Part shown: positions 4,874 through 41,339 of the stretch, piece by piece
How positions within the stretch are numbered: the first letter of the stretch is position 1
How the letters are laid out: every line of letters begins with the position of its first letter
Source of the DNA: Macrostomum lignano
Lineage: Eukaryota
NCBI GenBank assembly: GCA_002269645.1
Contig: NIVC01000672.1
Span: forward strand, 248,001 to 312,000
Reading direction: 5' to 3'
Length of the DNA: 64,000 nt
Program-made: the position numbers and the translations under genes
Notes under the pieces: model-generated
What the model was told of the DNA's origin: nothing
What the model saw: only the letters and a program-made list of their open reading frames with translations
The model's database searches: none

Positions 4874-4890
<17 letters not shown>
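3907..4890 (+). repeat. Direct segmental duplicate, copy B
   Basis: Near-identical to 1-~980. Confidence 0.9.
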
Positions 4891-4930
<40 letters not shown>

Positions 4931-5003
4931 GTCTGTCTGTCTGTCTTAGTGTGTGTTTGTCTGTCTGTCTGTCTGTCTGCCTGTCTTAGTGTTTGTCTGT
5001 CTG
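4447..5003 (+). repeat. (TGTC)n microsatellite
   Basis: Tetranucleotide repeat; first part has the same interruptions as 541-980. Confidence 0.97.
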
Positions 5004-5399
5004 TCGATAAGCATATTTATTGAGCATTTTTAATTTGGCCGCTGCTCTTCCTCACAGGTGCTCAGCTGTACCAAACCATAATGCTATATTTTCATATCTC
5101 GATGCAGCATTTTCATGGTTAAGAAAATGGTCTCCAAGTTTTTATTTAAGCTTTATAGAAACTCGCATATTTATTGCTCTGGGCATTGAACTCAGCAGAT
5201 TGGGCTGAACTCCAGCAGGTGGAGCTCCGGATGCTGTCCAGTGTTTATCGGTGTTTGGCTTATCTATTGTTAATAGTTTTCAACCCGACCCGCCTGCTCC
5301 GAGATCTCCCCATCTCAGTCAGATCCCATCTCTTTCTCCTATTATCCTGAGCAGTGCCTGATCGACGCTCCCTTTCCCACCGAGTCGATCCCGCTGCAG

Positions 5400-8300
5400 C
5401 ACCAGGGCCCGCGCCGCACCACCTCGGAACCGCTGGCGCTGCTCTCCATGCCGCCCCGGGGGGCCGCCGCAGCTGCTGCCGCCGCCGCCGCTGCAAACAG
5501 CGTCTGCGACGCCGCCTCCGACGCCGGCTTCTCTGCGGCCGCGTCGACTCAGGACGAACCCGCCGTCGGCGCTGCGACCTCCGCCGCTCTTCCCCACTTA
5601 CCGCCTCCGCCGCCGCCGCCACCCGCCCGAGCTCCGTCGCTGGAGAGCTCGACAGTGCAGCACGAGGCCAAACTGACCTGGCTGCTGTACACCCTGAGCG
5701 ACCCGCTGGTGAAGATGTTCCTCAGACTGCGCCAGTTCCTCATGGGCGCCAGCTACATCCTCACCCTGGTCAGCATGATGGCCTGGAGCGTCACCTACGT
5801 GTCGTTTTGCACCCTGCCGTTCCTGCTGCTCTCCTGCCTGCTCTGGCTGTCGCCCGGCACCCGGAGGTTCACGCTGGGCCTGTCGCCGCTGCTGGTGGTG
5901 TACTCCACCGGCCTGCTGCTGGCCAACTATGCCTTCAACTTCAACCTGCCCGAGATCTACCTGGCCAGGCGGAATCAGTCCTCCTTTGCTCAGATCGGAC
6001 TGCAGGTGCGACCTCAGCCTGCCCACTCTCCCTCACACTCTCCCTCACTCTACTCGCCACTCTCGCTCACACTCTCGCTCACACTCTACTACCCACTCTC
6101 CCTCACACTCTACTCCCCACTCTCCCTCACACTACTCCCCACTCTCCCTCACACTCTCCCTCACTCTACTCGCCACTCTCCCTCACACTCTCCCTCACAC
6201 TATACTACCCACTCTACCTCACACTCTACTACCCACTCTCCCTCACACTCTACTACCCACTCTCCCTCACACTCTACTCCCCACTCTCCTTCACACTCTA
6301 CTCCCCACTCTCCCTCACACTCTACTCCCCACTCTCCCTCACACTCTACTACCCACTCTCCCTCACACTCTACTACCCACTCTCCCTCACACTCTACTCC
6401 CCACTCTCCTTCACACTCTACTCCCCACTCTCCCTCACACTCTACTCCCCACTCTCCCTCACACTCTACTACCCACTCTCCTTCACACTCTACTCCCCAC
6501 TCTCCCTCACACTCTACTACCCACTCTCCCTCACACTCTACTACCCACTCTCCTTCACACTCTACTCCCCACTCTCCCTCACACTCTACTACCCACTCTC
6601 CCTCACACTCTACTCCCCACTCTCCTTCACACTCTACTCCCCACTCTCCCTCACACTCTACTCCCAACTCTCCTTCACACTCTACTCCCCAATCTCCCTC
6701 ACACTCTACTTAGTCTCTTGCACTACCCTACTGTCTTTCACAGTCTACCCCGACACCCAATCCCGCTCAGGTGTACGAGGCGCCCATGCTGACATTCGCC
6801 GCTCAGCTGACCTTCTGCTGCGTGTTCTACTTCACGCTGTGGACTTTCCTGTCCGAGAGGCGGCAGGGCGTCAGCCACGACACCCGGGCCGCGCTCGAAC
6901 TGTACCACCTTCGCGGCCATTCCTTGCACCGGCGGCGCCGCAAGACCATGGAGACTCTGATCATCGAGGTCATGTCCAAGTACTCATTGATCATCTGCTG
7001 CACCTTCTGGGTGCTCATGTGCTCACGCTCGGTTGTCAACATCTCCCATATCATTGTGATGGCCATCTTCCTGTACTTCATCATCACGTTCAGGGTGAGT
7101 TCATTTTGATTGTGATGAGGCTTGTGAATGCTGGCAATGCGCATCCTGAATACAAAGCAGTGACAGGCTATCCTTATTACAAATCAGTAACAGGCTGTCT
7201 TAAAAAGTGACAGACTATCCTGAGGAGTGACAGGCTATTCTAAAGAGTGACAGGCTATTCTAAAGAGTGACAGGCTATTCTAAAGAGTGACAGGCTATTC
7301 TAAAGAGTGACAGGCTATTCTAAAGAGTGACAGGCTATTCTAAAGAGTGACAGGCTATTCTAAAGAGTGACAGGCTAACATTAAGAACAAACTGTGTAGC
7401 CTAGTGCAGCTTGAGTACACAGGAAGTTAATCCAACGGTCATCGCCCATTCTTTTCGCGCCTCGCAGCTGTTCTACGGGTTCTGGCGCCGGCAGCTGATT
7501 GTCTGCTTCTGGGGCATCATGCTCTACTCCATGCTCACCCTGCTGCTCATCTACGCCTACCAGTTCCAGAGCGTGCCCGAGTTCATTACCAGGCTGACAG
7601 GCATTCAGCCAGCCACGTGAGTTGCTTGCTGCGGCTGGAAATCCTGGTTTTATTTATACTTAGCTGTTTGCCAGTTTGTTGAAATATCTGCATCTGTAGT
7701 TAGCGGCAGTTTTGGCATCTCTGCATCTGTAGTTAGCGGCAGATTTGACATCTCTGCATCTGTAGTTAGCGGCAGTTTTGACATCTCTGCATCTGGAGTT
7801 AGCGGCATTTTTGTCATCTCTGCATCTGTAGTTAGCGGCAGTTTTGGCATCTCTGCATCTGTAGTTAGCGGCATTTTTGGCATCTCTGCAGCTGTAGTTA
7901 GCGGCATTTTTGGCATCTCTGCATCTGTAGTTAGCGGCATTTTTGGCATCTCTGCATCTGTAGTTAGCGGCATTTTTGGCATCTCTGCAGCTGTAGTTAG
8001 CGGCATTTTTGGCATCTCTGCATCTGTAGTTAGCGGCATTTTTGGCATCTCTGCATCTGTAGTTAGCGGCATTTTTGGCATCTCTGCATCTGTAGTTAGC
8101 GGCATTTTTGGCATCTCTGCATCTGTAGTTAGCGGCATTTTTGGCATCTCTGCATCTGTAGTTAGCGGCATTTTTGGCATCTCTGCAGCTGTAGTTAGCG
8201 GCAGTTTTGGCATCTCTGCATTTGGAGTTAGCGGCAGTTTTGGCATCTCTGCATCTGTAGTTAGCGGCAGTTTTGGCATCTCTGCATCTGTAGTTAGCGG

Positions 8301-11300
8301 CAGATTTGGCATCTCTGCATCTGTAGTTAGCGGCAGTTTCGGCATTTCTGCATCTGTAGTTAGCGGCAGTTTTGGCATCTCTGCATCTGTAGTTAGCGGC
8401 ATTTTTGGCATCTCTGCATCTGTAGTTAGCGGCAGTTTTGGCATCTCTGCATCTGTAGTTAGCGGCAGATTTGAAATCTGCATCTGTAGTTAGCGGCAGA
8501 TTTACAATGTCAGCTAGCGGCAGATTTGCCCCCGATCCATTGCAGCCTGAAGGAGATCGGCATCGAGAAGTACGAGACTCCGCAGCTCTTCCTCAACCTG
8601 CTGTTCCCCACCTCCTTCATCATCGTGATCATGATCCACGTGAAGAACTTCCACAAGACTTTCCTGCAGCTGTCCAACATGCAGCCGGACCTGGACCCCT
8701 CGGCCACCGAGCAGCCCATCCAGCAGCTGCAGCCGGCCCCGCCCAGCTCCATCGAGCGGCCCATCGAAGTTGACGTCGAGATGACGGCGGCGGCCGGCCG
8801 CGAATCCGAGATCGAGGACGATTTTGAGGACCCCGCGACCGCGGCCTCCGGCGGCGGCGCAGCTGGCAAGCGGGCAGGCGGAGCCTTCAACTCCAAGACT
8901 GCTGCGCTGCGGCGGAGTGAGTGGCTGCGGAGAGTCTGGGCACCTGCGGAGTGTGGGGGAGTCTGGGCACCTGTGGAGTCTAGGCACCTGTGGAGTCTGG
9001 GCACCTGTGGAGTCTGGGGACCTGTGGAATCTGGGGAGTCTGGGGACCTGTGGAGTCTGGGGACCTGTGGAGTCTGGGCGAGTCTGGGGACCTGTGGAGT
9101 CTGGGCGAGTCTGGGGACCTTTGGAATCTGGGGGAGTCTGGGACCTGTGGAATCTGGGGAGTCTGGGGACCTGTGGAGTCTGGGCACCTGTGGAGTCTGG
9201 GGACCTGTGGAGTCTGGGCGAGTCTGGGGACCTGTGGAGTCTGGGCGAGTCTGGGGACCTGTGGAATCTGGGGGAGTCTGGGGACCTGTGGAGTCTGGGG
9301 ACCTGTGGAGTCTGGGGACCTGTGGAGTCTGGGGACCTGTGGAGTCTGGGGGAGTCTGGGGACCTGTGGAGTCTGGGCGAGTCTGGGGACCTGTGGAATC
9401 TGGGGGAGTCTGGGGACCTGTGGAGTCTGGGCGAGTCTGGGGACCTGTGGAATCTGGGGGAGTCTGGGGACCTGTGGAGTCTGGGGACCTGTGGAGTCTG
9501 GGGGAGTCTGGGGACCTGTGGAGTCTGGGGAGTCTGGGGACCTGTGGAGTCTGCGGGAGTCTGGGGACCTGTGGAGTCTGGGCGAGTCTGGGGACCTGCG
9601 GAGTCTGGGGGAGTCTGGGGAGTCTGGCGGGCACCTAATTCTGTGTGACTGTAGATTGTGGTAACCTGGTTCTTAAAATCAGCGCATTCTGGGGGAACCC
9701 CATTCCGCATTGCGTGTTGCAATAACTATTTTATTGTTTGTCACTAATTGCACTCACCCTCCCACCCTGTACACATTGCAGCGCTGCTCAAGACTCAATT
9801 GTACGAGAATGCCGTGCTGAGACAGACAAAACGTAAATTTATGGATATTATACTGTATTATTATTAACTGATCCAGAATCTTGGTACACATACTACTTAT
9901 ATGAATACCGCATGCTATAGAAGAAACAATACTCGAACCCCCGACCTTCCACTCTACCCGCAGTGATCCGCAAGGACCTCAACGCCCTGATTGTGAAGGC
10001 CAACGCCTTCTACTCGCTCTATTCGAAGAAATTCTCGCCTACGCTGTGGCGCTTTCTGGAGGTGCACTGGTATAAGGCGGCCGGCCTGGTCATTGTCTGC
10101 ACCGCAACCCGCCCCACCGATGCCGGAAATGTGAGCCTCTGACCTGCTGCTGACACCGCCCCTCCCTAGCATCTGACACCGCCCCTCCCTAGCATCTGAC
10201 ACCGCCCCTCCCTAGCATCTGACACCGCCCCTCCCTAGCATCTGACACCGCCACTCCCTAGCATCTGACACCGCCCCTCCCTAGCATCTGACACCGCCCC
10301 TCCCTAGCATCTGACACCGCCCCTCCCTAGCATCTGACACCGCCACTCCCTAGCATCTGACACCGCCCCTCCCCCGCCGCTGACACCGCCCCCTCACATC
10401 TGACACCGCCTCTCCCTAGCATCTGACACCGCCCCTCCCCACATCTGACACCGCCCTTCCCTAGCATCTGACACCGCCCTTCCCTAGCATCTGACACCGC
10501 CCTTCCTGATATTTGACACCGCTACTCCTGATATTTGACATCGCCCCTCCTGACATCTGACACAGCCTTTCCCTAGCATCTGACACCGCCTTTCCCTAGC
10601 ATCTGACACCGCCCTTCCCTAGCATCTGACACCGCCCTTCCTGACATTTGACACCGCCCTTCCCCACATCTGACACCGCCCCTCCCCACATCTGACACCG
10701 CCACTCCCTAGCATCTGACACCGCCACTCCCTAGCATCTGACACCGCCCCTCCCTAGCATCTGACACCGCCCCTCCCTAGCATCTGACACCGCCCCTCCC
10801 TAGCATCTGACACCGCCACTCCCTAGCATCTGACACCGCCTTTCCCTAGCATCTGACACCGCCCTTCCCTAGCATCTGACACCGCCCTTCCTGACATTTG
10901 ACACCGCCCTTCCCCACATCTGACACCGCCCCTCCCCACATCTGACACCGCCACTCCCTAGCATCTGACACCGCCACTCCCTACATCTGACACCGCCCCT
11001 CCCTAGCATCTGACACCGCCCCTCCCTAGCATCTGACACCGCCCCTCCCTAGCATCTGACACCGCCCCTCCCCCGCCGCTGACACCGCCCCTCCTCACAT
11101 CTGACACCGCCCCTCCCTAGCATCTGACACCGCCCCTCCCCACATCTGACACCGCCCTTCCCTAGCATCTGACACCGCCCTTCCCTAGCATCTGACACCG
11201 CCTTTCCCTAGCATCTGACACCGCCCTTCCTGATATTTGACACCGCTACTCCTGATATTTGACATCGCCCCTCCTGACATCTGACACAGCCTTTCCCTAG

Positions 11301-14300
11301 CATCTGACACCGCCTTTCCCTAGCATCTGACACCGCCCTTCCCTAGCATCTGACACCGCCCTTCCTGACGTTTGACACCGCTACTCCTGATATTTGACAT
11401 CGCCCCTCCTGACATCTGACACCGCCCCTCTCTAGCATCTGACACCGCCCCTCCCTACATCTGACACCGCCCCTCCCTAGCATCTGACACCGCCCTTCCT
11501 GACATCTGACACCGCCTTTCCCTAGCATCTGACACTGCCCCTCCCCACATCTGACACCGCCCTTCCTGACATCTGACACCGCCCTTCCTGACATCTGACA
11601 CCGCCCTTCCTGACATCTGACACCGCCCTTCCTGACATCTGACACCGCCCTCCAGTTTATAGTTTTTTTGCATTTTCAACTCGGCATTTTTCTCCCTGCA
11701 GTACGAGGCCGCCAACTTCTTCTACATCGTCTTGCTGCCGCTTTACCTGGTCGCGCCGGACATCGTGTCCGTCCTCTACCTGTTCTGGAGCGCCTTCCTC
11801 ATCCTAGGCAAAATGATCTACCAGCTGGGGCTCGTGCACACCGCCATTGATAGGCAGGTCGTCACCAACTGCACCGTGAGTGACACCGCTAACCTCTCTG
11901 ACACCACTGACCTCTGTGACATCACTGACCTCTGTGACACCACTGACCTCTGTGACACCACTGACCTCTGTGACACCACTGACCTCTGTGACACCACTGA
12001 CCTCTGTGACACCGCTGACCTCTGTGACATCACTGACCTCTGTGACACCGCTGACCTCTGACACCACTGACCTCTGTGACATCACTAACCTCTGTGACAC
12101 CACTGACCTCTGACACCACTGACCTCTGTGACACCACTGACCTGGGACACCACTGACCTCTGACACCACTGACCTCTGTGACACCACTGACCTGGGACAC
12201 CACTGACCTCTGACACCACTGACCTCTGTGACAGCACTGACCTCTGACACCACTGCCCCATGACACCACTGACATCTGACACCACTGCCTTCTGACACCA
12301 CTGACCTCTGACACCTCTGACATCTGACACTCCTGCCCATGACACCACTGGCACCACTGACCTCTCTGACACCCCTGCCCATGACACCACTGACATCTGA
12401 CACTTTGCGGATCCTGACACCGCCGCCCGCAGTCGGACCTGACCCCGCCGGAGAAGGGCTCGAACGCCACCTATCTGCCCACGCGAATGGTGAACAACGC
12501 CAAGTACTTCGGCTTCTTCGTGGCCGCTGACGGCGAGTTCTTCTCGTACATCATCCAGTACATGGCCATCGTGGTGTGCCTGGCCTTCCAGCACATCATC
12601 TCGCTGCACCAGCGCAAATTCTACCTGAACAACCCGCGCCCGGTGCCCGGCATCGTCTTTCCCAACTTCGCCTTCGCCGACTTTGAGAAATTCTACCGGG
12701 CCCGCGTCATCGGTCAGCCCGCCGCTCCGCCGCCGACCGCGGGAGCCGCCGCGCCAGCCGAGTCTTCCACCGGCCTGGTCGGCACCCTGGTGAAGCTGCT
12801 GGCCAACTTCGGCTGCTACAAGTTCGGCCTGGAGCTGGCGTACACGGCCACAGTGGTTGTGTCCTGCCTCCGCCTGGACCTGCTCAGCTGCCTGTACATG
12901 CTGTTCCTGCTCATCTTCACCTTCATGCAGCGGAGGCTGGTGCGCCGCCTGTGGATTGTTTTCCGCCTGCTGCTGTGCTTCACCTTCCTGGCCCAGTTCC
13001 TCCTGGCCTGCGGCTACCCGCCCATGCTCTGCCTGGAGTATCCCTGGTTCCGCAGCGATATCCGCGCTCAGGCCAGCATCCGCTACGTGCTCACCGACAA
13101 CTTCCGGCACTGGATGTTCCTGCCGGCCTACAATGCGCCCCCGCTGGCGCAGAAACTCATCGGTGAGTGGCCGGGTGTTGGGGCATTTTAGTAGTCTTTG
13201 GCAGTTGATGAGCCGCCATGGACACCATTTTAGCAGTCCTTGGCATTTTCATGAGCCACCATGGACACCATGGTAGCAGTCCTTGGCATTTTCATGAGCC
13301 GCCATGGACACCATTTTAGTAGTCCTTATCATTTAGCATTGCCACATTTGGCCTGGAATTCTGACCTCGCCCTAACAGACCTCTCTTTCAACTCCCCCCC
13401 ACAGCCGACTACTTCCTGCTAGTGCTGGTGAGCTGCCAGCACCGGGTGTTCAAAGCCGAAGTCTACAACGGCGGCGCCGGCTACGACAGCTCCAACGACC
13501 CCGTCTGGCGCGACGTGGCGCCAATGCTGCGCCTGCGGAACTCCTTCATGAACTCGAAGTGAGGCTGGAACTACTTTAAAGAATGCCTATTTTTGAGCTA
13601 TGAGCCCTTATGAACTAATATAAGACCCAATCTATGGACCTATTCAAAACCCCGTCTCTGACCCAACTGCATGTACATGTATCCCATGTCTGTGATCCCA
13701 TGTATAACACCATCACTGACCTCAGTATTAATTATCCCATCTAGATTTATCACCTAATATATGATTTCATCTACATGTTCAACACATTTCTAACCCATCT
13801 ATGACCCTTTCTACTTAGTTGACCCATCTATGACCATGTCTACTTATTTGACTCATCTATGACACTTGTCTATTTAGTTGACCCATCTATGACCCTGTCT
13901 ACTTATTTGACCCATCTATGACCCTGTCTATTTAGTTGACCCATCTATGACCCTGTCTACTTAGTTGACCCATCTATGACCCTGTCTACTTAGTTGACCC
14001 ATCTATGACCTTGTCCTCATAGTTGACCCATCTATGACCCTGTCTATATACTTGACCTATCTATGACCCTGTCTATATACTTGACCCATCTATGACCCTG
14101 TCTATATAGTTGACCCATCTATGACCCTGTCTATATACTTGACCCACCCATGCCCGTCAGGCTATACACCAACAACAAGTCCAAACAATGCAAACCATTT
14201 GCAGATCCGCAGACCTGCTCATCCTGCTGCTCAGGCTGATCTTCTCCTGGATATTCTGGGCCTGCCCGTTTCTGCTGCTGATCCTGGGCTTTCTGTCATT

Positions 14301-17300
14301 CAACATGTTCTCCTTCCTGTACATCCTGACCGCCTTCTACTTCATCGGCAAGGGCCACCGCTTCCTGCTGCAGCAGCGCAAGAAGCTCATTAAGTTGTGG
14401 AACGCCGCCCTGGGCCTCAACGTATTCGTGGTGCTGTGCAAGTGCCTGCTGCAGATCATCGGCTGCTCGTTTCCGCAGCACAGCGTCGACTGGAAGCACC
14501 AGGTGTTCGGCATTCAGTGCCTTAATATGAAGGCCTTCACTGAGTACGCCATCGACAACTCCTGGGACAGCTCCATCAACAATCCGGGTGAGTTCCGCTT
14601 GCGGATTTTAAAAGAAGTTGGGTAGTTCATTTGGGTTGCAGGAGGTTTTAGTTTCTGCCTTTGACGGTTTGAAAACCCAAAGTTGGCTCTTGGAAAATCC
14701 GCGGTTATTCCGTGTGATTCTGTGAGATTTCTTTATTTACGATTTTCGGGGTTTAGCAATTTTCATGATTTTTTGAGTATTTTCATAGGTTTGGAGTTTC
14801 GTGGGTTTTAATGGGTTCAGTGGAAATTTCAGTGGGTTTTGGAGGATTTCAGTGGGTTTTGGAGGACTTCAGTGGGTTTTGGAGTATTTCAGTGGGTTTT
14901 GGATGATTTCAGTGGGTTTTGGATGCTTTTAGTGGGTTTTGGAGGATTTCAGTGGGTTTTGGAGGATTTCAGTGGGTTTTGAGGGATTCCTAAGGGTTTT
15001 GAGGATTTTCAGGGATTTCCATAGATTTTATACGGTATTTCTAGAGCGTTATTGGTTCCCTTAGGATTGGAATATCTTCGCATAGAATTTCTGCATTTTC
15101 AATAAAAGTACAAGCGCTCACAACAGCCGCAATCCCGTCCTGAACCCGGCAGGCATCGTGATGGACATGGTCTGCTTCATCTTTATGATCGTACAGAAGC
15201 GGGTGTTCCTCACCACCTACTTCACCGAGGTGCGGCTGGACACGGAGATCCAGAACTCCTTCACCTCCAAGGGCGCGCGAATAATCACGGCCTCGATGAG
15301 GCGCCAGAAGGAGCAGAACCAGGCCGAGGAGCTCAACGAAGTTGAGTACATCCGGCGCAAGGTTGAGCATCTGAAGTCGCGCAAACGGCAGAAACGCGAA
15401 ATCACTGAGCACTTTCAGGTGAGCAGAGTTTTATTTGGGCCTGCCACCCCCCCCCCCCCTCAGTGCTATGCCGTCTCTTATACATACAGACTACTAAATA
15501 CCAAGGACTACTGAAGTAGAAGAGACGGGAAAGTCTCTACGTTTCTTAGAAAATGCCTAAAACCCAAAAAGATGGCACGGCTCGGCTCATTGGTTTTATG
15601 AATCTACTTTATCATTCTTAGCAACACAGATGATAAAATAGAATCCTAATTTTTGCACAAAAAGCTCTATGAATATCAATGGAGCCATAAGAAAGGCACA
15701 GCATATCAAAATATGAACATTGGGTCCGCCTCCTATCAAAAGCAATATAACAATTTACGTAGTTTCCCAGGCATGAACACTCTCTGTGCCCTCTGGAAAT
15801 TGGCCAACTTTGTTTGCGCACGGAATCGAACCCGCGCGTGTTTTGGCGCCATAGCCAGCTGCTCCGCCCCATCTTTTGCGCACGGAATCGAACCCGCGCG
15901 TGTTTTGGCGCCATAGCCAGCTGCTCCGCCCCATCTTTTGCGCACGGAATCGAACCCGCGCGTGTTTTGGCGCCATAGCCAGCTGCTCCGCCCCATCTTT
16001 TGCGCACGGAATCGAACCCGCGCGTGTTTTGGCGCCATAGCCAGCTGCTCCGCCCCATCTTTTGCGCACGGAATCGAACCCGCGCGTGTTTTGGCGCCAT
16101 AGCCAGCTGCTCCGCCCCATCTTTTTGCGCACGGAATCGAACCCGCGCGTGTTTTGGCGCCATAGCCAGCTGCTCCGCCCCATCTTTTTGCGCACGGAAT
16201 CGAACCCGCGCGTGTTTTGGCGCCATAGCCAGCTGCTCCGCCCCATCTTTTTGCGCACGGAATCGAACCCGCGCGTGTTTTGGCGCCATAGCCAGCTGCT
16301 CCGCCCCATCTTTTTGCGCACGGAATCGAACCCGCGCGTGTTTTGGCGCCATAGCCAGCTGCTCCGCCCCATCTTTTTGCGCACGGAATCGAACCCGCGC
16401 GTGTTTTGGCGCCATAGCCAGCTGCTCCGCCCCATCTTTTTGCGCACGGAATCGAACCCGCGCGTGTTTTGGCGCCATAGCCAGCTGCTCCGCCCCATCT
16501 TTTTGCGCACGGAATCGAACCCGCGCGTGTTTTGGCGCCATAGCCAGCTGCTCCGCCCCATCTTTTTGCGCACGGAATCGAACCCGCGCGTGTTTTGGCA
16601 CCATAGCCAGCTGCTCCGCCCCATCATTAAGCTATGATAATGATTGGCAGGCTTGCAATTCCAATAGTAATGAAGCCGCCCGCCATGCCAACCCCACCAG
16701 GCCGTCCGGTCCGGTACCCGCGACCTGTTCTACGCCGTGGACGCGGACGGCAACAAGGTGCTCACCATTGACGAGTCCGCCGAGGACGAGCCCGACCCGC
16801 ACTGGCAGCCGACCGCCGCCGAGAACCTCATCGAGCAGGGCCTGCTGAAGGCCACCGAGTTCGCCCAGAAGCCGGGCGAGATGATCCGCAAGACCATCAA
16901 TACGCTCGGCCAGCGGCGCTACTCCCGCTCCGTCTCCATTAACGAGGACGAGCTCAAGCGCCTGGTGGCCGGCGCCACCCCCACCGCCGCTGCCACCGCC
17001 GCCACTGCCTCGGCGCTGTCGGGCGAGGAACGGCACTCGCTGCTGCTGGCCGGTCCGCCGATTCCCGAGGAGCTCGAACTGGCAGCCGCGGCGGCCGCTG
17101 CTGCTACCGCTTCCGCCGAGGACACCGACGGAGCGGCTGGTGCCGACAACGACGCGGCGATGTCGGCCTCGACTGAACAGCCGCTGCAGCTGCAGCACAG
17201 CCTCATGGAGGTGCCGCCGCCGCCCACCACCCCCGTGCTGAGTGCCAGCAACACGCTGGTTGACCTCAACGAGGCCATGCTAATGCGGAGCATCGGCAGC

Positions 17301-20300
17301 GACTTCCGGCAGCAGGTGGGCCGGCAGTTCGGGGTGGCCAGGCTAGCAATCCATATTGGCTAGACTAGCAATCCATATTGGCTAGACTAGCAATCCATAT
17401 TGGTCAGACTAGCGATCCATATTGGCTAGACTAGCAATCCATATTGGCTAGACTAGCAATTCATGTTGGTCAGACTAGCAATCCATATTGGTCAGACTAG
17501 CAATCCATATTGGTCAGACTAGAAATCCATATTGGTCAGACTAACAATCCGTATAGGTCAGACTAGCAATCCATTTTGGTCAGACTAGCAATCCATATTG
17601 GTCAGACTAGCAATCCATATTGGTCAGACTAGCAATCCATATTGGCTAGACTAGCAATCCATATTGGCTAGACTAGCAATTCATGTTGGTCAGACTAGCA
17701 ATCCATATTGGTCAGACTAGCAATCCATATTGGTCAGACTAGAAATCCATATTGGTCAGACTAACAATCCGTATAGGTCAGACTAGCAATCCATTTTGGT
17801 CAGACTAGCAATCCATATTGGTCAGACTAGCAATCCATATTGGTCAGACTAGCAATCCATATTGGCTAGACTAGCAATCCATATTGGTCAGGCTAGCAAT
17901 CCATATTGGCTAGACTAGCAATCCATATTGGTCAGACTAGCAATCCATATTGGCTAGACTAGCAATCCATATTGGTCAGGCTAGCAATCCATATTGGTCA
18001 GACTAACAATCCATATTGGCTAGACTAGCAATCCATATTGGTCAGTCTAGCAATCCATATTGGTCAGGCTAGCAATCCGTATAGGTCAGACTAGCAATTT
18101 ATATTGGTCAGATTAGCAATCCATATTGGTCAGACTAGCAATTTATATTGGTCAGACTAGCAATCCATATTGGTCAGGCTAGCAATCCATATTGGTCAGA
18201 CTAGCAATCCATATTGGTCAGACTAGCAATTCATATTGGTCAGACTAGCAATCCATATTGGTCAGACTAGCAATCCATATTGGTCAGACTAGCAATCCAT
18301 ATTGGTCAGACTAGCAATCCATATTGGCTAGACTAGCAATCCATATTGGTCAGACTAGCAATTCATGTTGGTCAGGCTAGCAATCCATGTTGGTCAGGCT
18401 AACAATCCATATTGGTCAGGCTAGCAATCCATATTGGCTAGACTAGCAATCCATATTGGTCAGGCTAGCAATCCATATTGGTCAGGCTAGCAATCCATAT
18501 TGGTCAGATTAGCAATTCATATTGGTCAGACTAGCAATTTATATTGGTCAGATTAGCAATTCATATTGGTCAGACTAGCAATTTATATTGGTCAGACTAG
18601 CAATTTATATTGGTCAGACTAGCAATCCGTATAGGTCAGACTAGCAATCCATATTGGTCAGATTAGCAATTCATATTGGTCAGACTAGCAATTTATATTG
18701 GTCAGACTAGCAATCCGTATAGGTCAGGCTAGCAATCCATATTGGCTAGACTAGCAATCCATATTGGTCAGGCTAGCAATCCATATTGGTCAGATTAGCA
18801 ATTCATATTGGTCAGACTAGCAATTTATATTGGTCAGACTAGCAATCCGTATAGGTCAGACTAGCAATCCATATTGGTCAGATTAGCAATTCATATTGGT
18901 CAGACTAGCAATTCATATTGGTCAGACTAGCAATCCATATTGGTCAGACTAGCAATCCGTATAGGTCAGACTAGCAATTTATATTGGTCAGACTAGCAAT
19001 CCATATTGGTCAGACTAGCAATCCATATTGGTCAGATTAGCAATCCGTATAGGTCAGACTAGCAACCCATTCCTAACATTCCAATCCCTTTAGTCGCCGG
19101 CGCTCTCCGACCAGCAGCGGCTGCAGTTGTCCTTCGTCCATCAGCGCCCACCCCCGCCGCCAGTCCGCGGTCTCGGCGATGTCGGCGACGGCAGCATCGG
19201 CAGAGGCCACGTGGCGGCGGGCTACCCGACCCTCGCTTCGGAGGCTGCCGGCACGCTGCTGGCCGGAGATGGCCTGGCCGCAGCCGTGGCCGCTGCCGGG
19301 GTGTCGGCCAGCAGCTATGAAGGCGACCACGAGGACTTCGACGACGAGGAGGAGGAGGACGCAGGCGCGGAGGGCGGCAACTCGCGGGCCTGGAGCCTGG
19401 TGTGGTGGGTGGTGTCGGCGCTGGGCCGCAACCTGCTGGCTCTGCTGCGGGTGCTGTGCAGCCTGCTGGACCGCGCCACCGAGGACTACCGCAAGATCAA
19501 GGACCAGATGATGCAGAGCAAGCTGGAGGCCAAGGACGAGCGCCTGGGCGAGTCGGCGGTGGACGCGCAGGGCGGCGTGGAGCTGAGCATCCGGCCCTAC
19601 CCGGAGGAGTGCATCCAGGAGGACGAGGACTCAAGCGACGTGCCGCTGGAGCCGCTGCCGGAGCCGCAGACCCTCGGGCAGGCAGCCGGCCAGCTGCTGC
19701 TGCTGCTGCAGTACCTGCTGTTCTCCCGCCTGACACCGCTGTGCTACGTTGCCATGGTAACCTATCACCTGTTGAACTGCACGGTGTTCTCGCTGTCGTA
19801 CCCGCTGGTCGTGTTCATGTGGGGCATGCTGTCCGTGCCCTTCCCCACCAAGCGCTTCTGGCTGTCCGCCATCGCCTACACAATGCTACTCATAGTAGTG
19901 AAGTACGCGCTGCAGTTCACCGTGATCAAGAAGGAGCTGATCAGGGAGGACAGCGGCCTCCTGGCTGCCTGGTTCGCCAACGAGATCGGCGCTACCAGCG
20001 ACTACTCGACCCCGGTTGCCGAGATCATCATCCTGGGCCTGCTGTTCCTGCAGCGGAGCAGCCTGAAGCGCTACGGACTGTGGGACATCTCCAGGCAGCA
20101 CACCACCTCCATGTTCTACTCTGGAACTGGGCGACACAGACCCTGTGAGCAGTTTGCCTGTTGAGTTTGTGGCTGTAGGGTTTTTTAATTAGGCTGACTA
20201 AGCTACCGATATGTTGCGTAAATAACTTTATTTAGACGATTTTCTGAATCTTTATTAAGCTACCCATATGTTGCGTAGAAATCTATATTTAGGCTTTCTC

Positions 20301-23300
20301 CAAATCTCCGATTAAGCTACCGATATGTTGCGTAAATGATTATATTTAGACTATTTTCCGAAGCTGTATCCAGCTACCGATATGTTGCGTAAATAACTAT
20401 ATTTAAGCGATTTTCCTAATGCTATCAATATGTTGCGCAACTTCAAACCTGATTCCGCATTATTATTTTTCCTCCCGGCCCGCAGCGCAAGCAACCCGCG
20501 GCAGTGTTGGCACCGCGGAGCCTTCGACGATCGCCAAGGAGGCGCTGGGCGGCGACAGTTCAGCGGCTGACGTTGCCGACGGCGGCATTCGCTACCGGCG
20601 ATTCCGGCCGCAGGTGCCGCCTTCGCCGACGCCTTCGCCGCTGACGCCTGAGGCGGTAGTGGGCAGCACCGACGGGCTGGAGTCTGAGGACGGGCTGGAC
20701 AGGTCCAGGCAGTTCTTTGATGAAGCTGCAGATGGGGTGAGTTGACAGGGCGTACTGGATTCTGAAGGGCTGTGTTGGAGAGGATGGTCTGTAGGTTAGG
20801 GTGGGGGCTTCTGTTTCTGTAGGTAAGAGCGATTTACTGTTTTTGGGCGGAGTGACTGTTGGGGTGACTCTAGTGAGAGAGCGGAATGGCTGTAGCAGAG
20901 GGCGGGGTGACTCTAGTGAGAGAGCGGAATGGCTGTAGCAGAGGGCGGGGTGACTCTAGTGAGAGAGCGGAATGGCTGTAGGAAGAGTGCTGTAGGAGAG
21001 GGCGGAATGGTTGTAGGAGGGTGGGCGAAATGGCTGTACGCTCGGAGGAGGGCGGAATGGCTGTAGGAGAGGGCGGAATGGCTGTAGAATGTGCGGAATG
21101 GCTGTAGGAGAGGGCGGAATGGCTGTAGAATGTGCGGAATGGCTGTAGGAGAGGGCGGAATGGCTGTAGAATGTGCGGAATGGCTGTAGGAGAGGGCGGA
21201 ATGGCTGTAGAATGTGCGGAATGGCTGTAGGAGAGGGCGGAATGGCTGTAGAATGTGCGGAATGGCTGTAGGAGAGGGCGGAATGGCTGTAGAATGTGCG
21301 GAATGGCTGTAGGAGAGGGCGGAATGGCTGTAGAATGTGCGGAATGGCTGTAGGAGAGGGCGGAATGGCTGTAGAATGTGCGGAATGGCTGTAGGAGAGG
21401 GCGGAATGGCTGTAGAATGTGCGGAATGGCCGTAGGAGAGGGCGGAATGGCTGTAGAATGTGCGGAATGGCTGTAGGAGAGGGCGGAATGGCTGTAGAAT
21501 GTGCGGAATGGTTGTGAGAGAGGGCGGAATGGCTGTAGGAGAGGGCGGAATGGCTGTAGGAGGTTGGATAATTGTGCAACAGGCAGCAGCAGCTCCCGCT
21601 CCCCCCCCCCCAGCATCGGAGCGGGCGCCGGTCCAAGTCCTCCTACCCGACCTCCTGCCTGCTGAGCTGCCTGACCTGCCATCCGTTTCGCGAGTTCTTC
21701 AAGAAGATCGCGGACCCGAACATCTCGGTGCGGGTGGACCTGTACTCCTGGATGTTCATCAGCGAGTTCGTGTCGTTGCTCATCATCTTCTTCGGCTACA
21801 CGGCCGGCTTCGCTGGCCCCGGCCGAGTCGAGGACGAGAACATCATCACCTACATCTCCAAGGAGGAGGTGAGGCTCTCGCTGCTCTACTCGCTAAGTAG
21901 TAATGCAAGCATTTTAATAACTAAATAAATCCTTCAATTCGCGCAGATCCCGCTGACTCTCACGCTGACCATGTTCGTGCAGTTCACCATGCTGCTGGTG
22001 GACCGCGGCCTCTTCCTCACCCGCTCCAGGCGGGGCAAATTCTTCTTTCACCTGCTGCATGTGACTTTGCTGCACGTCTACCTGAAGTTCATCCTGCCCT
22101 ACATGACCTCGTGAGCGTTGGAGCTTTATTTCTGATTCCGCAATCCTAACTCTGATCTTAAAATGCCAAGATAGATCCCAATAATCCCAACACTGATCCC
22201 AATAATCCCATCACTGATCCCAGTAATCCCAACACTGATCCCAATAATCCCAACTCTGATCCCAATAATCCCAACACTGATCCCAATAATCCCAACACAC
22301 TAATCCCAATAATTCCATCACTAGTCCCAATAATCCAATCACTAGTCCCAATAATCCCATCACTCGTCCCAATAATCCCAACTCTGATCCCAATAATCCC
22401 AACACTGATCCCAATAATCCCAACACTGATCCCAATAATCCCATCACTGATCCCAGTAATCCCAACACTGATCCCAATAATCCCAACTCTGATCCCAATA
22501 ATCCCAACACTGATCCCAATAATCCCAACACACTAATCCCAATAATTCCATCACTAGTCCCAATAATCCAATCACTAGTCCCAATAATCCCATCACTCGT
22601 CCCAATAATCCCAACTCTGATCCCAATAATCCCAACACTGATCCCAATAATCCCAACACACTAATCCCAATAATTCTAACTCTGATCCCAATAATCCCAA
22701 CACTGATCCCAATAATGACAACACTGATACCAATAATCCCAACTCTGATCCCAATAATCCCAACTCTGATCCCAATAATCCCAACACTGATCCCAATAAT
22801 CCCAACTCTGATCCCAGTAATCCCAACTCTGATCCCAATAATCCCATCACTGATCCCAATAATCCCAACACTGATCCCAATAATCCCAACACACTAATCC
22901 CAATAATCCCAACTCTGATCCCAATAATCACAACACTGATCCCAATAATCACAACACTGATACCAATAATCCCAACTCTGATCCCAATAACCCAACACTG
23001 ATCCCAATAACCCAACACTGATCCCAATAATCCCAACACTGATCCCAATAATCCCAACTCTGATCCCAATAATCCCAACACTGATCCCAATAATCCCAAC
23101 ACTGGTTCAAAATTCCATTACTGATCACAGCTCAGTAGCGGTGGTAAAACTATGAAATGAAGTGAATATTTAAATATCCTGTCTGAAATGTACTTTTAAC
23201 CGTCCCGCCGCCCCCGCAGAGCCGATTACGTGTCCCGCAGCTGGGTGATCAAGATGTTCTACGCCTCCAAGTGCGTGTACTTCGCCCTGTCAGCCTATCA

Positions 23301-23837
23301 GATCCTCTCGGGCTACCCGTCGCGCGTCCTTGGCAACTTCATCTGCAAGCGGCAGAACTACCTGAACCTGTTCTCATTCAAGATCTACCTCATCATTCCG
23401 TTCCTGTTCGAGCTGCGGTCTGTCATGGACTGGATGCTCACCAACACTGCGCTCAGCATCTCCCACTGGCTGCTGGTTGAGGACATCTACAGCGTCATCT
23501 TCGTGTCGAAGTGCTGGCGCCGGGCCGAGATCGACTACCCCACGGAGCGGGCCAAGAACCGGACACCTTGCTACAAGTACTGTCCGGGATTCTGGCTCAT
23601 TGCCCTCATCGTGGCCTGCATCTGGGCGCCCGTGCTCTGGTTCTCCGTGATGAGCAACGTCTTCTTGGAGATCAATCACGTGACCTCGTGCACCTCTGAG
23701 CTGTCCATCGGCTCCTTTACACCGCTGTACACCCTGCGGACAACCAGCGTGAAGGGCTTCACGCAGGAGAACCGGACCTTCGTGCACGACTGCTTCGCTA
23801 AGAAGGGCGAGGTGTGTGCCTGCGGGTGGGCAGACAT

Positions 23838-23876
<39 letters not shown>

Positions 23877-23899
23877 CTAAGACAGACAGACAGACAGAC

Positions 23900-23954
<55 letters not shown>

Positions 23955-24168
23955 GTAAGACAGACAGACAGACACTAAGACAGAGACAGACAGTAAGACA
24001 GACAGACAGACACTAAGACAGACACAGACAGAGACAGACACTAAGACAGACAGACAGACACTAAGACAGACACTAGACAGACACAGACAGAGACAGACAC
24101 TAAGACAGACAGACAGACAGACAGACACTAAGACAGGCAGACAGAGACAGACAGACAGACAGACAGAC

Positions 24169-24235
<67 letters not shown>

Positions 24236-24447
24236 GTAAGACAGACAGACAGACACTAAGACAGAGACAGACACTAAGACAGACAGACAGACACTAAGAC
24301 AGACACAGACAGAGACAGACACTAAGACAGACAGACAGACAGACACTAAGACAGACACTAGACAGACACAGACAGAGACAGACACTAAGACAGACAGACA
24401 GACAGACAGACTAAGACAGGCAGACAGCGACAGACAGACAGACAGAC

Positions 24448-24494
<47 letters not shown>

Positions 24495-24718
24495 GTAAGA
24501 CAGACAGACAGACACTAAGACAGAGACAGACAGAGACAGACACTAAGACAGACAGACAGACACTAAGACAGACACAGACAGAGACAGACACTAAGACAGA
24601 CAGACAGACAGACACTAAGACAGACACTAGACAGACACAGACAGAGACAGACACTAAGACAGACAGACAGACAGACAGACACTAAGACAGGCAGACAGAG
24701 ACAGACAGACAGACAGAC

Positions 24719-24777
<59 letters not shown>

Positions 24778-24848
24778 GTAAGACAGACAGACAGACACAG
24801 ACAGAGACAGACACTAAGACAGACAGACAGACAGACACTAAGACAGAC

Positions 24849-24883
<35 letters not shown>

Positions 24884-24906
24884 CTAAGACACTAAGACAG
24901 GCAGAC

Positions 24907-24951
<45 letters not shown>

Positions 24952-27655
24952 CACACTAACAGGCTTAATTTTTAATTTCCTAGAATTTGATAATTGGTAG
25001 CTTTTCTGGAAAAAGCATGCCGCATTAACATGTCTTACATATTGAGATCCGGGTCGTTTCACGCTGAGATGAGCTGTCATGAGATCCGCAGGCCGCTCGT
25101 GAGCGCACAGATTGAGCCGCCTTGAATTTTTATTTCTGCTGCTTAATTTTCACAAACCCAGTTGAGCCAATCTGCCATCTGCATGTCGCATCCGCCTTGT
25201 GCTGAATAATGAAAAACAGTACCGATGCAGCTCCGCAGCTTCCCCCACCCCCTCCATCCCGTAGCAGTCAGACCCCTTTCGCCTAGGCAGGCCCGCCTAC
25301 CACCAGGTAACAATGGCATTGTGTTATAACTGCGCCTATAGCTTATATTCAGGCTGAGCATAGCAACAATTTATATCCGAGATGGAGCCTCATTTGACCG
25401 AGTGAGTGCGCTTATAATTCTCATAAAATGCTTTATTTCTCGTCAACTGTTTACTGCTATTTAAAACTGAGACTGATAAAACGCATTACAGACCTACTTA
25501 TAGTAGAGCAGTTTGAGCATCGCTCCTATTTAACTCTGCAACAACATGCTAAAACTGATTTTATTATATCTCTAGATCTAATGCTGGGGAGAATTTTATC
25601 CTTAGGCCTTAGCCGGCTCCTTCAACTCCCCTACCCGCTCCCCAGGAGGCGGACAAGCGCATGGGCCACCTGCTGCAGTCCACCACCGCCTACATTGTGG
25701 AGTTCGACGGCATGTCCAGCGTGCTGTGGACCATCACGCCGCCGTCGCGCCGCGCCCTCAGCAAGGAGCTCGGCAACAACCGCAGCACCGTGCGGCTCTT
25801 CTTCAAGCTCGAGTGCCTCCGCTCCAAGGACGGCGGCGTCTCGAGAAAGAAAGTGTTCGAACGGGAGCTTGGGTTCGGCACCCCTGTGCGGGAGAGCCTC
25901 ATCCGGGTGCTCAACAGCTCGGCCGCCAACGCCTCCGTCACCTTCCACCAGATTGGCGACCGCTTCCTCCTGCTCAGCAGCGACCCCTCTGGTGGCATGG
26001 AGCCGCTGAGCAACAGCCTGCCCGCTAAGAAGCTCAACACCAGCAGGATTGACATTCAGGTGACACCGGTTGCTCACCTGTGATCTCCATTCCATTCACC
26101 GTTGTCATTGGGTCTCACCTGTGATCTCCATTCCATTCACCGTTGTCATTGGGTCTCACCTGTGATCTCCATTCCATTCACCGTTGTCATTAGGTCTCAC
26201 CTGTTATCTCCATTCCATTCACCGGTGCCATAGGGTCTCACCTGTGATCTCCATTCCATTCACCGGTGCCATAGGGTCTCACCTGTAATCTCCATTCCAT
26301 TCACCGTTGTCATTAGGTCTCACCTGTTATCTCCATTCCATTCACCGGTGCCATAGGGTCTCACCTGTGATCTCCATTCCATTCACCGTTGTCATTGGGT
26401 CTCACCTGTGATCTCCATTCCATTCACCGGTGTCATTGGGTCTCACCTGTGATCTCGGCACCATTCACCGGTGTCATTGGGTCTCACCTGTGATCTCGGC
26501 ACCATTCACCGGTGTCATTGGGTCTCACCTGTGATCACTGCTGCTCACATCTACATTGAAAAGCATTCACTAATCCCCTGAGTCAATAAAGCAACTCTGA
26601 ATTGGTGCTCTTCAGGCTGACCTACGATCTGACGAGAACAGCGTGTCCTGGTGGGAGCTGCAGGACATCTACAGCGGCAACTTTCTGTGCCCGATGAACC
26701 GCACGGGCAGGCAGGTGGGCCAGGCCGACATGCACAACATTCTGCGGCTGGTGTTCTTCTCGGAGCGGTCCAAGTCTGAGAACCGGCTTATTCAGGTTAG
26801 AGGAGTGCTATTATAGTTGCTATGCTGTTGCCATCCAGTGGTTGCTATGCAGCGGTTGTTATGCTGGTTGCTATACAGCGGTTGTTATGCTGGTTGCTAT
26901 GGCTTCTAGGCTGGTTGCTATGCAGTGGTTTCCATGCTGGTTGCTATGCAGTGGTTTCCATGCTGGTTGCTATGGCGTGGTTTTTAGGCTGGTTGCTATG
27001 CAGTGGTTTCTATGCTGGTTGCTATGCAGTAGCTTCTATGTTGGTTGCTATGCAGTGGCTGCTATTCTGGTTACTATGCAGTGGTTTCCATTGTAGTCGC
27101 TATGCAGTTGTATGCTGACTGGTCGCTATGCAGTGTAGAATACTGTTTCGTATTCAACTGCTATGTCACTTGTGCTGTTGCTATGACAACGCCAAACCGC
27201 CCCCACCCCCTGTCCCACAGGCCATCCAGAAGGTGGGCATGTACGGCATCCTGTCCGTGTTCGTGATCTCCATCGCGCGGGTGCTGCGGGCGGGCATCAT
27301 CCCCCGCCACTACCTGGTCATGTACGTGGACATGCCGCACGTGGATCGGCTCCTGGCTCTGCTGCACGACATCTACTTGGTCCGCGAGTCCCAGGAGCTC
27401 GAACTGGAGGAGGAGCTGTTCGCCAAGCTGCTGTACCTGTTTCGCTCCCCATCAATGCTGATCAAGTACACGCAGACTCCTGAGTCCATCCTGAGCAAGT
27501 TCTACCACGAGCCCGCGCCGCTGCAGCCCGCCGACCCGCTGGCCAACCTGCCGGCCGCCGCGGCTGCCGAGGAGGCGGGCGGCGTCGGCGGAGGTGGTGG
27601 CGGCCACTGCAGGAAGCCGTCGGACTCGGCCAGCAAGCACTTCAAGCACGAGTGA
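5400..27655 (+). CDS. piezo: Piezo-type mechanosensitive ion channel, 5' part upstream of this model; 20 exons, ~2,465 aa
   Basis: Exons with GT-AG boundaries: 5400-6005, 6771-7094, 7468-7616, 8546-8916, 9782-9832, 9964-10130, 11702-11875, 12433-13162, 13405-13558, 14205-14587, ~15086-15418, 16701-17315, 19094-20144, 20486-20736, 21614-21868, 21947-22110, 23220-23811, 25646-26059, 26616-26795, 27221-27655. Piezo motifs: [77 protein letters not shown]. All phases are consistent except one base near 15088. Confidence 0.96.
6020..6710 (+). repeat. 24-bp intronic minisatellite CCACTCTCCCTCACACTCTACTAC
   Basis: Tandem units filling the Piezo intron 6006-6770. Confidence 0.95.
7208..7377 (+). repeat. 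20-bp intronic minisatellite GTGACAGGCTATTCTAAAGA
   Basis: About 8 near-perfect units. Confidence 0.95.
7689..8500 (+). repeat. 33-bp intronic minisatellite GCATCTGTAGTTAGCGGCATTTTTGGCATCTCT
   Basis: About 24 units. Confidence 0.95.
8925..9630 (+). repeat. Compound GGAGTCTGGGGACCTGT intronic minisatellite
   Basis: Mixed ~10/17-bp subunits starting just after the 8917 donor. Confidence 0.93.
10145..11655 (+). repeat. 23-bp intronic minisatellite GCATCTGACACCGCCCCTCCCTA
   Basis: About 65 units. Confidence 0.95.
11880..12400 (+). repeat. 18-bp intronic minisatellite GACACCACTGACCTCTGT
   Basis: Starts immediately after the 11876 donor. Confidence 0.93.
13790..14145 (+). repeat. 29-bp intronic minisatellite TGACCCATCTATGACCCTGTCTACTTAGT
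   Basis: About 12 units. Confidence 0.92.
14815..15010 (+). repeat. 20-bp intronic minisatellite TTCAGTGGGTTTTGGAGGAT
   Basis: About 9 degenerate units. Confidence 0.9.
15811..16625 (-). repeat. 62/63-bp intronic tandem repeat carrying a tRNA-like B box
   Basis: About 13 near-identical units; the minus strand reads GGGGCGGAGCAGCTGG...GCGGGTTCGATTCCGTG. Confidence 0.93.
17340..19065 (+). repeat. 22-bp intronic minisatellite GACTAGCAATCCATATTGGTCA
   Basis: About 78 units. Confidence 0.96.
20870..21560 (+). repeat. 41-bp (21+20) intronic minisatellite based on GCGGAATGGCTGTAG
   Basis: Alternating ...GAGAGG and ...AATGT subunits. Confidence 0.93.
22175..23102 (+). repeat. 21-bp intronic minisatellite GATCCCAATAATCCCAACACT
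   Basis: Tandem degenerate units. Confidence 0.94.
23831..24950 (+). repeat. (GACA)n intronic microsatellite
   Basis: Reverse complement of the (TGTC)n family at 541 and 4447, with the same CACTAAG interruption. Confidence 0.97.
26072..26535 (+). repeat. 41-bp intronic minisatellite CTCACCTGTGATCTCCATTCCATTCACCGTTGTCATTGGGT
   Basis: About 11 units starting 12 bp after the 26060 donor. Confidence 0.93.
26820..27130 (+). repeat. Degenerate GCTATGCAGTGGTT/GCTGGTT intronic repeat
   Basis: Imperfect tandem units in the last Piezo intron. Confidence 0.8.
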
Positions 27656-32200: not shown

Positions 32201-32295
32201 CTGCAGCTGCGGATGAAGAGAGCGGCGAGGAGGATGAGGATGATGACGATGATGCTGAGGAGTCTGGAGATGAGGCTGGGGATCTGTTACACTGA
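29240..32295 (+). CDS. riok3: RIO kinase 3-like protein, predicted catalytically dead; start codon unresolved
   Basis: Exons 29240-29629, 30000-30497, 30881-31299, 31947-32295 with consistent phases (552 codons). RIOK3 N-terminal signatures: LASVMSEQLA, SDFVLALMLQQEFDREFD...KLNGNQKV, TKHDAEICGRRNAERM, NRVYNSLKVHA.QEERRSA; kinase lobe VVVKVF...AGVASP...AAPSL...LVHGNL...LLRDCRAVCGFF. Confidence 0.9.
29720..29915 (+). repeat. 30-bp intronic minisatellite TCTAGTGACCTCAGTTGACCCCAGACAATC
   Basis: Tandem units in RIOK3 intron 1. Confidence 0.88.
30545..30850 (+). repeat. 14-bp intronic minisatellite AAAATCCCAATAGC
   Basis: Tandem units in RIOK3 intron 2. Confidence 0.92.
31365..31930 (+). repeat. 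AAGCATGAGAAATCCCCGAATTCCC intronic minisatellite
   Basis: Variable ~16-27-bp units in RIOK3 intron 3. Confidence 0.92.
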
Positions 32296-40729: not shown

Positions 40730-41160
40730 AGGGATTGCTCACTGAATGAAGATCTGTGATCAGATTGCTCACTGAGTAAGTTTGTGATCAGATTGCTCAC
40801 TGAATGAATCGGTGATCAGATTGCTCACTGAATGAATCGGTGATCAGATTGCTCACTGAGTGAATTTGTGATCAGATTTCTCACTTCAACTTCTTCAGCT
40901 TCAGCTTCACTTCAGCTTCACTTCAGATTGCCTCTCCGCTTCATCAGAGAGTGAACCTGCCTCTCCGCTCCATCAGAGAGTTAACCTGCCTCTCCGCTCC
41001 ATCAGAGAGTGAACCTGCCTCTCCGCTCCATCAGAGAGTGAATCAGCCTCTCCGCTCCATCAGAGAGTGAACCTGCCTCTCCGCTCCATCAGAGAGTGAA
41101 TCAGCCTCTCCGCTCCATCAGAGAGTGAATCAGCCTCTCCGCTCCATCAGAGAGTGAATC
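40730..41160 (+). repeat. Two adjacent minisatellites (GATCAGATTGCTCACTGAATG...; 29-bp CTGCCTCTCCGCTCCATCAGAGAGTGAAC)
   Basis: Tandem units at 40730-40885 and 40928-41160. Confidence 0.9.
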
Positions 41161-41339
41161 TGCTACAGACTCTAGCAGATATTCTGCAGACTTGCTCGCC
41201 AACAAAGAGCGCGCATCTCACGGTCGCGCACTTCCTTGGTGTCTATGGGCCAACCCGATTGGTTCTGCGGCACTCTGCTGCCATATTGGTGACTTTGTCT
41301 GGCTCAGCAGCAAAGGCCCTCTCACACCTGACCCAAGCA

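Follow-up and report, generated by a model that had tools for sequence, protein, structure and literature searches.

A Piezo gene of the flatworm Macrostomum lignano (gene A, a member of paralog group A) carries a serine, Ser2300, at the position in its inner pore helix that corresponds to V2476 of mouse Piezo1, the hydrophobic transmembrane gate of that channel. The gene lies on the forward strand of a 64,000-nucleotide stretch of contig NIVC01000672.1 (assembly GCA_002269645.1, positions 248,001 to 312,000), hereafter the window, and all coordinates below are those of the window. Gene A is intact and a genuine member of the Piezo channel family. The presence of a serine at the gate position is more than chance: none of 146 inner-helix segments from other animals is polar there, and the serine is kept in three diverged M. 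lignano paralogs. The feature is a version of the Piezo pore gate that is particular to this lineage. It may change the speed at which the channel switches off, but the kinetic effect is not predictable from sequence.

Position and rarity of the serine

To place the serine, we aligned the last exon (exon 20) with all PDB chains. It matches exclusively Piezo channels (phmmer, E 4e-18 to 1e-13), and the alignment with mouse PIEZO1 is ungapped, with exon residue n corresponding to mouse residue 2459+n. A 587-residue query spanning the pore module reproduces the same register on mouse PIEZO1 (phmmer, E ~1e-93), and the serine occupies the identical column in a profile hidden Markov model (HMM) alignment of ~165 Piezo sequences and in an independent MAFFT alignment of 70 pore modules. 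An earlier reading made from the letters alone (the sequence-only reading) had drawn the same ungapped alignment against a mouse Piezo1 peptide, with Ser at V2476 and Val at F2480. Its coordinates, translation and peptide agree with the aligned PDB sequence, both placements are confirmed by phmmer, and the multiple alignment that it proposed as a check leaves the serine in the V2476 column rather than elsewhere, by HMMER, profile HMM and MAFFT alike. An AlphaFold2 monomer model predicts a single continuous helix over residues 2280-2309 at a predicted local distance difference test (pLDDT) score of 52-58, the mean for the pore module being 72.

To explore how rare the substitution is, we searched 1.84 billion cluster representatives with a HMMER profile built from exon 20 and its first relatives and obtained 1533 Piezo-like proteins. 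A table of the helix was made from the best 150 of these 1533 representatives plus relatives, aligned to the profile. The comparison set comprises 146 inner-helix segments from 142 non-Macrostomum proteins of vertebrates, arthropods, molluscs, annelids, echinoderms, rotifers and parasitic flatworms. At the V2476 position these segments have Val (94), Leu (41), Ile (4), Phe (4), Ala (2) and Met (1), and among the sequences aligned Ser is otherwise found there in M. lignano proteins only. Distant, probably non-metazoan Piezos vary at this position: a Chlamydomonas protein carries Gly, two metagenomic proteins carry Ala and one carries Thr. The non-polar rule is thus limited to the sampled animals and does not extend to the whole family. 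Of the two hydrophobic side chains that make up the canonical gate, gene A lacks the one at V2476 (Ser2300) and has the one at L2475 (Ile2299).

It is also evident that the serine does not stand alone. At position 2470, where all 146 other segments have Tyr, gene A has Leu; position 2472, elsewhere Thr (67), Ser (66), Gly (7) or Ala (6), is Val; and position 2467, aliphatic elsewhere, is Tyr. Val at the F2480 position is ordinary, being found in 11 of the 146 other segments. Plotted on an ideal helical wheel, 2472 and 2476 are separated by 40 degrees on the pore-facing side, and this pair reads Ser/Val in mouse and Val/Ser in the flatworm, the mean hydropathy of the pore face being 1.46 and 1.43, respectively. 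The lone polar pore-lining residue appears, on this idealized geometry, to have been shifted one turn toward the cytoplasm, beside a conserved positive charge. As the aligned sequences have it, the serine is part of a wider remodelling of the helix, which includes Y2470 to Leu, S/T2472 to Val, L2475 to Ile, V2476 to Ser and F2480 to Val or Ile.

Mouse PIEZO1 (5Z10, 6B3R, 6BPZ, 7WLT) and PIEZO2 (6KG7) have the same domain set as gene A and the same pore module, made up of anchor, outer helix, cap, inner helix and C-terminal domain, with a pore identity of ~31-34%. Their inner helix aligns without gaps to that of gene A, which retains K2479 (as Arg), R2482 and M2493. Gene A differs from mouse in having Ser for V2476, Ile for L2475, Leu for Y2470 and Val for S2472, in the changes MF to MY, EE to VD and PE to PS further along the pore, and in a shorter and divergent cap. 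The E2495/E2496 pair of mouse, Val-Asp in gene A, is one that we take to line the lateral ion portals of PIEZO1. The PS that replaces PE is common to all three M. lignano paralogs and otherwise rare, Ser occurring there in 9 of ~160 sequences. The invertebrate Piezo of Caenorhabditis elegans, PEZO-1 (9UOY, 9UOX, 9ZIS, 9ZIT; PMC12951647), shares the pore architecture; its V2366, the equivalent of V2476, keeps the gate hydrophobic and is among the tightest constrictions, whereas gene A does not keep this feature. Neodermatan flatworms belong to the same phylum, and their Piezos (Echinococcus P0168, Paragonimus P0065, Cichlidogyrus P0140, Protopolystoma P0121) share with gene A the MPHVD/ELPHVD signature after the inner helix; however, they have Phe, Leu or Val at the V2476 position, keep the GMY/GIY motif and are without the MF constriction, where SL, CL or AL is found. 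In six neodermatan proteins (P0168, P0065, P0140, P0037, P0039, P0002) the MF constriction is replaced by SL, CL, AL or CK, while the V2476 position remains hydrophobic.

A second, alternative inner-helix exon was looked for within the window and none is present. Separately, four other predicted proteins, P0010 (Mya arenaria), P0012 (Didymodactylos), P0013 and P0019, carry the inner helix and C-terminal domain twice in tandem, with differing gate-region sequences. These copies look like mutually exclusive alternative last exons read through by gene predictors; if so, tandem last exons would provide alternative pore helices in some invertebrates.

Gene model, paralogs and selection

A 20-exon model built with the M. 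lignano protein P0159 as guide has GT-AG boundaries at all introns and no internal stop codon, and its product is identical to P0159. Exon 20 follows a polypyrimidine tract and an acceptor AG (27219-27220) and closes with the stop TGA at 27653-27655. All five Piezo Pfam families are present far over their gathering thresholds, in the order Piezo_TM1-24 (271 bits), Piezo_TM25-28 (116), THU_Piezo1 (103), Piezo_THU9_anchor (258) and Piezo_cap (159). The 587-residue pore module matches 6BPZ and 5Z10 with E 2.6e-93 over 583 residues (phmmer). The anchor motif PF(X2)E(X6)W, including the equivalent of E2133, is present in exon 17, where it is aligned to mouse PFLVELRAVMDW. An AlphaFold2 model of the pore module gives 22 significant Foldseek matches, all of them Piezo (best E 9.6e-36) and including the cap crystal structures 4RAX, 4PKX and 4PKE. 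Nothing recognisable was found on the reverse strand of the reported segment.

The 5' end of the gene is less well described by the public annotation. The Piezo_TM1-24 match of the 2427-aa model covers profile positions 385-682 only, and exon-like matches to residues ~190-335 of paralogs B and C occur 3-4.5 kb 5' of window base 1 (stretch L002, 15-239 and 1158-1400; E down to 4e-12). Because these blade matches sit upstream of the window, the GenBank model is probably truncated. The true start probably lies upstream of the window rather than at the annotated ATG (5448), and the GenBank model likely lacks the distal blade exons, which would fall outside the window. The gene models of paralogs B and C contain the distal N-terminal blade, unlike that of gene A. 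GenBank models are also inconsistent within the locus family: PAA78665.1 (P0159), on this contig, has 2427 aa; PAA72971.1, on another contig, is a 1165-aa C-terminal model that begins at a Met equivalent to window position 17160; and P0011, one of the 1533 Piezo-like proteins, is an annotated product of the same locus family, a half-length model on another contig. The cluster of P0011 contains the full-length, near-identical M. lignano proteins P0158 (PAA69190.1) and P0159, the former being a 99.8%-identical copy of gene A. This points to several near-identical copies of gene A, as expected of a recently duplicated genome.

Beyond these copies, the Piezos of M. lignano fall into at least three paralog groups, A (the gene of the window), B (P0166, PAA BOX15_Mlig015119g5; P0001) and C (P0172, BOX15_Mlig022252g1; P0030), with pairwise identities of 48-51%. 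All three have the same remodelled inner helix and share VGMYG[IV]LSVF[VL]IS[IV]AR[VI]LR, the Ile-Ser pair included. The serine had been presented in the sequence-only reading as a property of this paralog; its presence in every M. lignano group found contradicts that, and because all three groups carry Ile-Ser, the serine is older than the duplication of the paralogs. Neighbour-joining on the pore module groups A, B and C as one clade in 100 of 100 bootstraps, apart from the Piezos of neodermatan flatworms. The organism-naming searches, which were not exhaustive, gave no M. lignano Piezo with a canonical gate, so that a fourth paralog of that kind may exist; word-indexed homolog searches gave few matches or mainly vertebrate ones and are incomplete for M. 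lignano Piezos.

The last exon of gene A and that of a copy of paralog B (contig L001) differ by a nonsynonymous divergence (dN) of 0.19 and a synonymous divergence (dS) of 1.07, giving a dN/dS of ~0.17, and the serine codon is TCC in A and TCT in B, a synonymous difference. Because dN/dS is low and the serine codon differs only synonymously, the serine has been maintained by purifying selection. The paralog comparison indicates that it is a lineage trait, fixed across the whole Macrostomum Piezo clade and maintained by selection. The structure of the last four exons is common to A and B, while their introns cannot be aligned; a synteny check against L001 showed that neither the introns nor the downstream genes (Skp1, methyltransferase) correspond, and no downstream synteny is common to A and paralogs B and C.

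Published gate mutants and competing explanations

A guide to the effect of such a serine is a set of mouse Piezo1 mutants (Zheng, Gracheva and Bagriantsev, eLife 2019, PMC6349400). In that study, the time constant of inactivation (tau) is 11.9 ms in wild type, 46.8 ms in V2476S (~4-fold slower), 62.2 ms in L2475S and 103 ms in the double mutant LV/SS, and 2.8 ms in L2475I (~4-fold faster); the rate tracks hydrophobicity at V2476; and Ser at L2469, I2473 or F2480 has no significant effect on inactivation. The premise of the sequence-only reading, that polar substitution at L2475, V2476 or F2480 slows inactivation, thus stands for the first two positions and fails for F2480, which lies outside the published inactivation gate because its serine mutant had no significant effect. 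Structures and molecular dynamics identify V2476 as the key hydrophobic transmembrane gate and S2472 as the one polar residue in that stretch of the pore. Gene A naturally combines the V2476S and L2475I substitutions, which were made singly and in a canonical helix, whereas the helix around them differs in gene A; no I-S double mutant is reported in the part of the study used here. If the two single effects multiply (11.9 × 3.9 × 0.24), tau would be ~11 ms, about wild type, and this estimate removes the simple prediction of slow inactivation. A preprint on Piezo3 contains nothing on the gate.

On balance, we consider it probable that gene A encodes a working mechanically gated channel that still inactivates, and in which Ser2300 would tune kinetics together with compensating changes, without inactivation being necessarily dramatically slow. 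In the trimer, three hydroxyls would line a girdle that is normally fully hydrophobic, and this ring would reduce the barrier by which dewetting shuts the pore in inactivation, tuning both inactivation and deactivation. Two features probably act as buffers: the adjacent Ile2299, equivalent to the L2475I that speeds inactivation in mouse, and the Val at 2472, which would make that helical face hydrophobic again one turn further up. Reverting Ser2300 to Val would then speed inactivation. Several points weigh against this reading. The multiplication presumes the same helix orientation and additive effects, and the mouse single mutant is a poor proxy because the flatworm helix also differs at Y2470 and S/T2472. 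The N-terminal half of the helix is without the invariant GLY motif, so that packing of the upper helix may differ, and the low-confidence AlphaFold2 inner helix gives no information on its pore-lining face or on orientation in the trimer. Other determinants of inactivation diverge in gene A as well, namely MF to MY, PE to PS and the cap, a major determinant of inactivation that is both divergent and shorter here. The literature searched holds no functional data or recordings for any flatworm Piezo.

The serine could instead make the channel naturally slow- or non-inactivating, as the sequence-only reading had it, with a tau at least several-fold that of mouse Piezo1 or a persistent current. 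The ~4-fold slowing by V2476S, the correlation of rate with hydrophobicity, the role of V2476 in structures and simulations and the selection on the serine all speak for this. We nevertheless regard it as unlikely, since Ile2299 acts in the opposite direction, V2476S alone still leaves mouse inactivation intact, F2480 lies outside the gate, and a trait of all three paralogs offers no paralog specialisation. A related view, that Macrostomum Piezos have lost the hydrophobic gate at the level of V2476 or shifted it by one turn, leaving all three paralogs slow-inactivating or gated mainly at the cap and cytoplasmic neck, is quite doubtful. Another account supposes full compensation: the girdle would be displaced one turn outward (Ile2469, Val2472, Phe2473), and the serine would be kinetically neutral, kept for conductance, selectivity, helix packing or plain inheritance from the ancestor of the clade. 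The exchange at 2472 and 2476, each breaking a rule that holds elsewhere (Ser, Thr, Gly or Ala at the one, a non-polar residue at the other), fits this well, as do their shared helical face, the unchanged mean hydropathy and the further pore changes (MF to MY, EE to VD and PE to PS). However, the closed mouse and worm structures are constricted at V2476 itself, the capacity of Val-2472 to act as a barrier is only presumed, and retention of the serine across a dS of ~1 argues that it is not neutral; we therefore treat full compensation as conceivable, if on the improbable side.

Two further explanations would remove the observation rather than explain it, and together they have little probability. 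The register could be wrong, through a 3-residue indel that equates GMY with the GLY motif or through a single-residue bulge, in which case Ser2300 would neither correspond to V2476 nor face the pore. The invariant Tyr2470 is indeed missing and a Tyr is found three residues earlier, which fits a 3-residue insertion. The equivalence of Ser2300 and V2476 is robust nonetheless, because any contiguous 3-residue insertion N-terminal of the serine leaves it six residues before R2482. Alignments with 3-residue indels were enumerated and rejected, as none that fits the conserved positions takes the serine out of its column; those that free it put a Ser at the conserved V2474 or require two indels. In addition, HMMER, the profile HMM and MAFFT are all ungapped, and ISIARVLR against LVVGKFVR is conservative at every other site. 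A register error is thus very unlikely. It is more improbable still that gene A is a decaying copy or an artefact of assembly or annotation in a duplicated, repeat-rich genome, although near-identical copies exist (P0158, and P0011 with its half-length model), minisatellites fill many introns and the start is probably misannotated. The open reading frame (ORF) is complete over 20 exons with canonical introns, the serine is identical in all copies and paralogs, and the window shows 0 mismatches in 37,655 nt to the contig (from 248001). A pseudogene was rejected on the intact 20-exon ORF and the dN/dS of ~0.17.

Surroundings of the gene and significance

Table 1. Features of gene A in the window, with mouse Piezo1 equivalents
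Feature	Coordinates	Strand	Remarks
Piezo gene coding region (M. lignano paralog group A)	5448..27655	+	20 exons, 2427 aa as annotated
Piezo exons 1-10	5448-6005, 6771-7094, 7468-7616, 8546-8916, 9782-9832, 9964-10130, 11702-11875, 12433-13162, 13405-13558, 14205-14587	+	
Piezo exons 11-20	15153-15418, 16701-17315, 19094-20144, 20486-20736, 21614-21868, 21947-22110, 23220-23811, 25646-26059, 26616-26795, 27221-27655	+	
Exon 17: THU9 end, anchor (its Glu = mouse E2133), outer helix	23220..23811	+	alignment to mouse PIEZO1 chains, E ~1e-93; Pfam Piezo_THU9_anchor
Exons 18 (25646-26059) and 19 (26616-26795): extracellular cap (CED)	25646..26795	+	Pfam Piezo_cap; Foldseek; splice sites
Exon 20, last: inner pore helix (TM38), C-terminal domain, low-complexity tail, stop TGA	27221..27655	+	
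Inner-helix core, = mouse 2463-2483	27230..27292	+	translation; phmmer alignment
Leu-Ser-Val, = mouse Y2470, V2471, S2472	27251..27259	+	
Ile2299, codon ATC, = mouse L2475	27266..27268	+	
Ser2300, codon TCC, = mouse V2476 (hydrophobic transmembrane gate)	27269..27271	+	phmmer, profile HMM, MAFFT
Arg-Val-Leu-Arg, = mouse K2479, F2480, V2481, R2482	27278..27289	+	both positive charges kept
Met-Tyr-Val-Asp, = mouse M2493/F2494 constriction and E2495/E2496	27320..27331	+	
Pro-Ser, = mouse P2536/E2537 constriction	27449..27454	+	Glu to Ser

The window is rich in repeats. Minisatellite arrays occupy 13 of the 19 introns, each intron having its own, with periods of 17-63 bp and up to ~79 copies; examples lie at 6070-6710, 7687-8503, 8932-9627, 10150-11653, 15813-16625, 17335-19070, 20989-21562, 22142-23104 and 26073-26536, and the intron between exons 18 and 19 holds a 41-bp minisatellite. 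Tracts of (CTGT)n/(CAGA)n are found at 543-1393, 4449-5005 and 23831-24949, and one of (AGTT)n at 57097-58584. Positions 1-1400 and 3906-5300 form a direct duplication with a period of ~3.9 kb, in which ORF translations are identical at an offset of 3906 bp and the CTGT microsatellite is included. On both strands, the repeats of the window give rise to numerous long ORFs that are spurious.

The public contig annotation shows a RIO1-family kinase gene (544 aa, PF01163) at 29261-32295 (+), shortly after the end of the Piezo gene. Ankyrin repeats occur in multiple copies (Ank_2, E 3.5e-28) in a 507-aa ORF at 41154-42677 (+). Three long ORFs, at 49774-51447, 60332-62113 and 62026-63999 (all +; 557, 593 and >650 aa), have no Pfam match, and no tRNA gene was found in the window by ARAGORN.

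From nematodes to mammals, Piezos are taken to share the hydrophobic gate at V2476, and the Macrostomum clade carries a hydroxyl at that position. The serine at the gate, the neighbouring Ile of opposing effect and the exchange of Ser and Val one turn away together amount to a natural double-mutant cycle, which bears on whether effects at the L2475/V2476 site are transferable across Piezos, whether they combine additively and whether the gate position can be shifted along the helix. M. lignano is a laboratory flatworm with stable transgenesis, and follow-up in vivo is therefore possible. If the gate has been lost or shifted, these paralogs would put the hydrophobic-gate model of Piezo inactivation to a natural test that selection has maintained; if the channel inactivates normally, they would caution against inferring kinetics from single gate residues.

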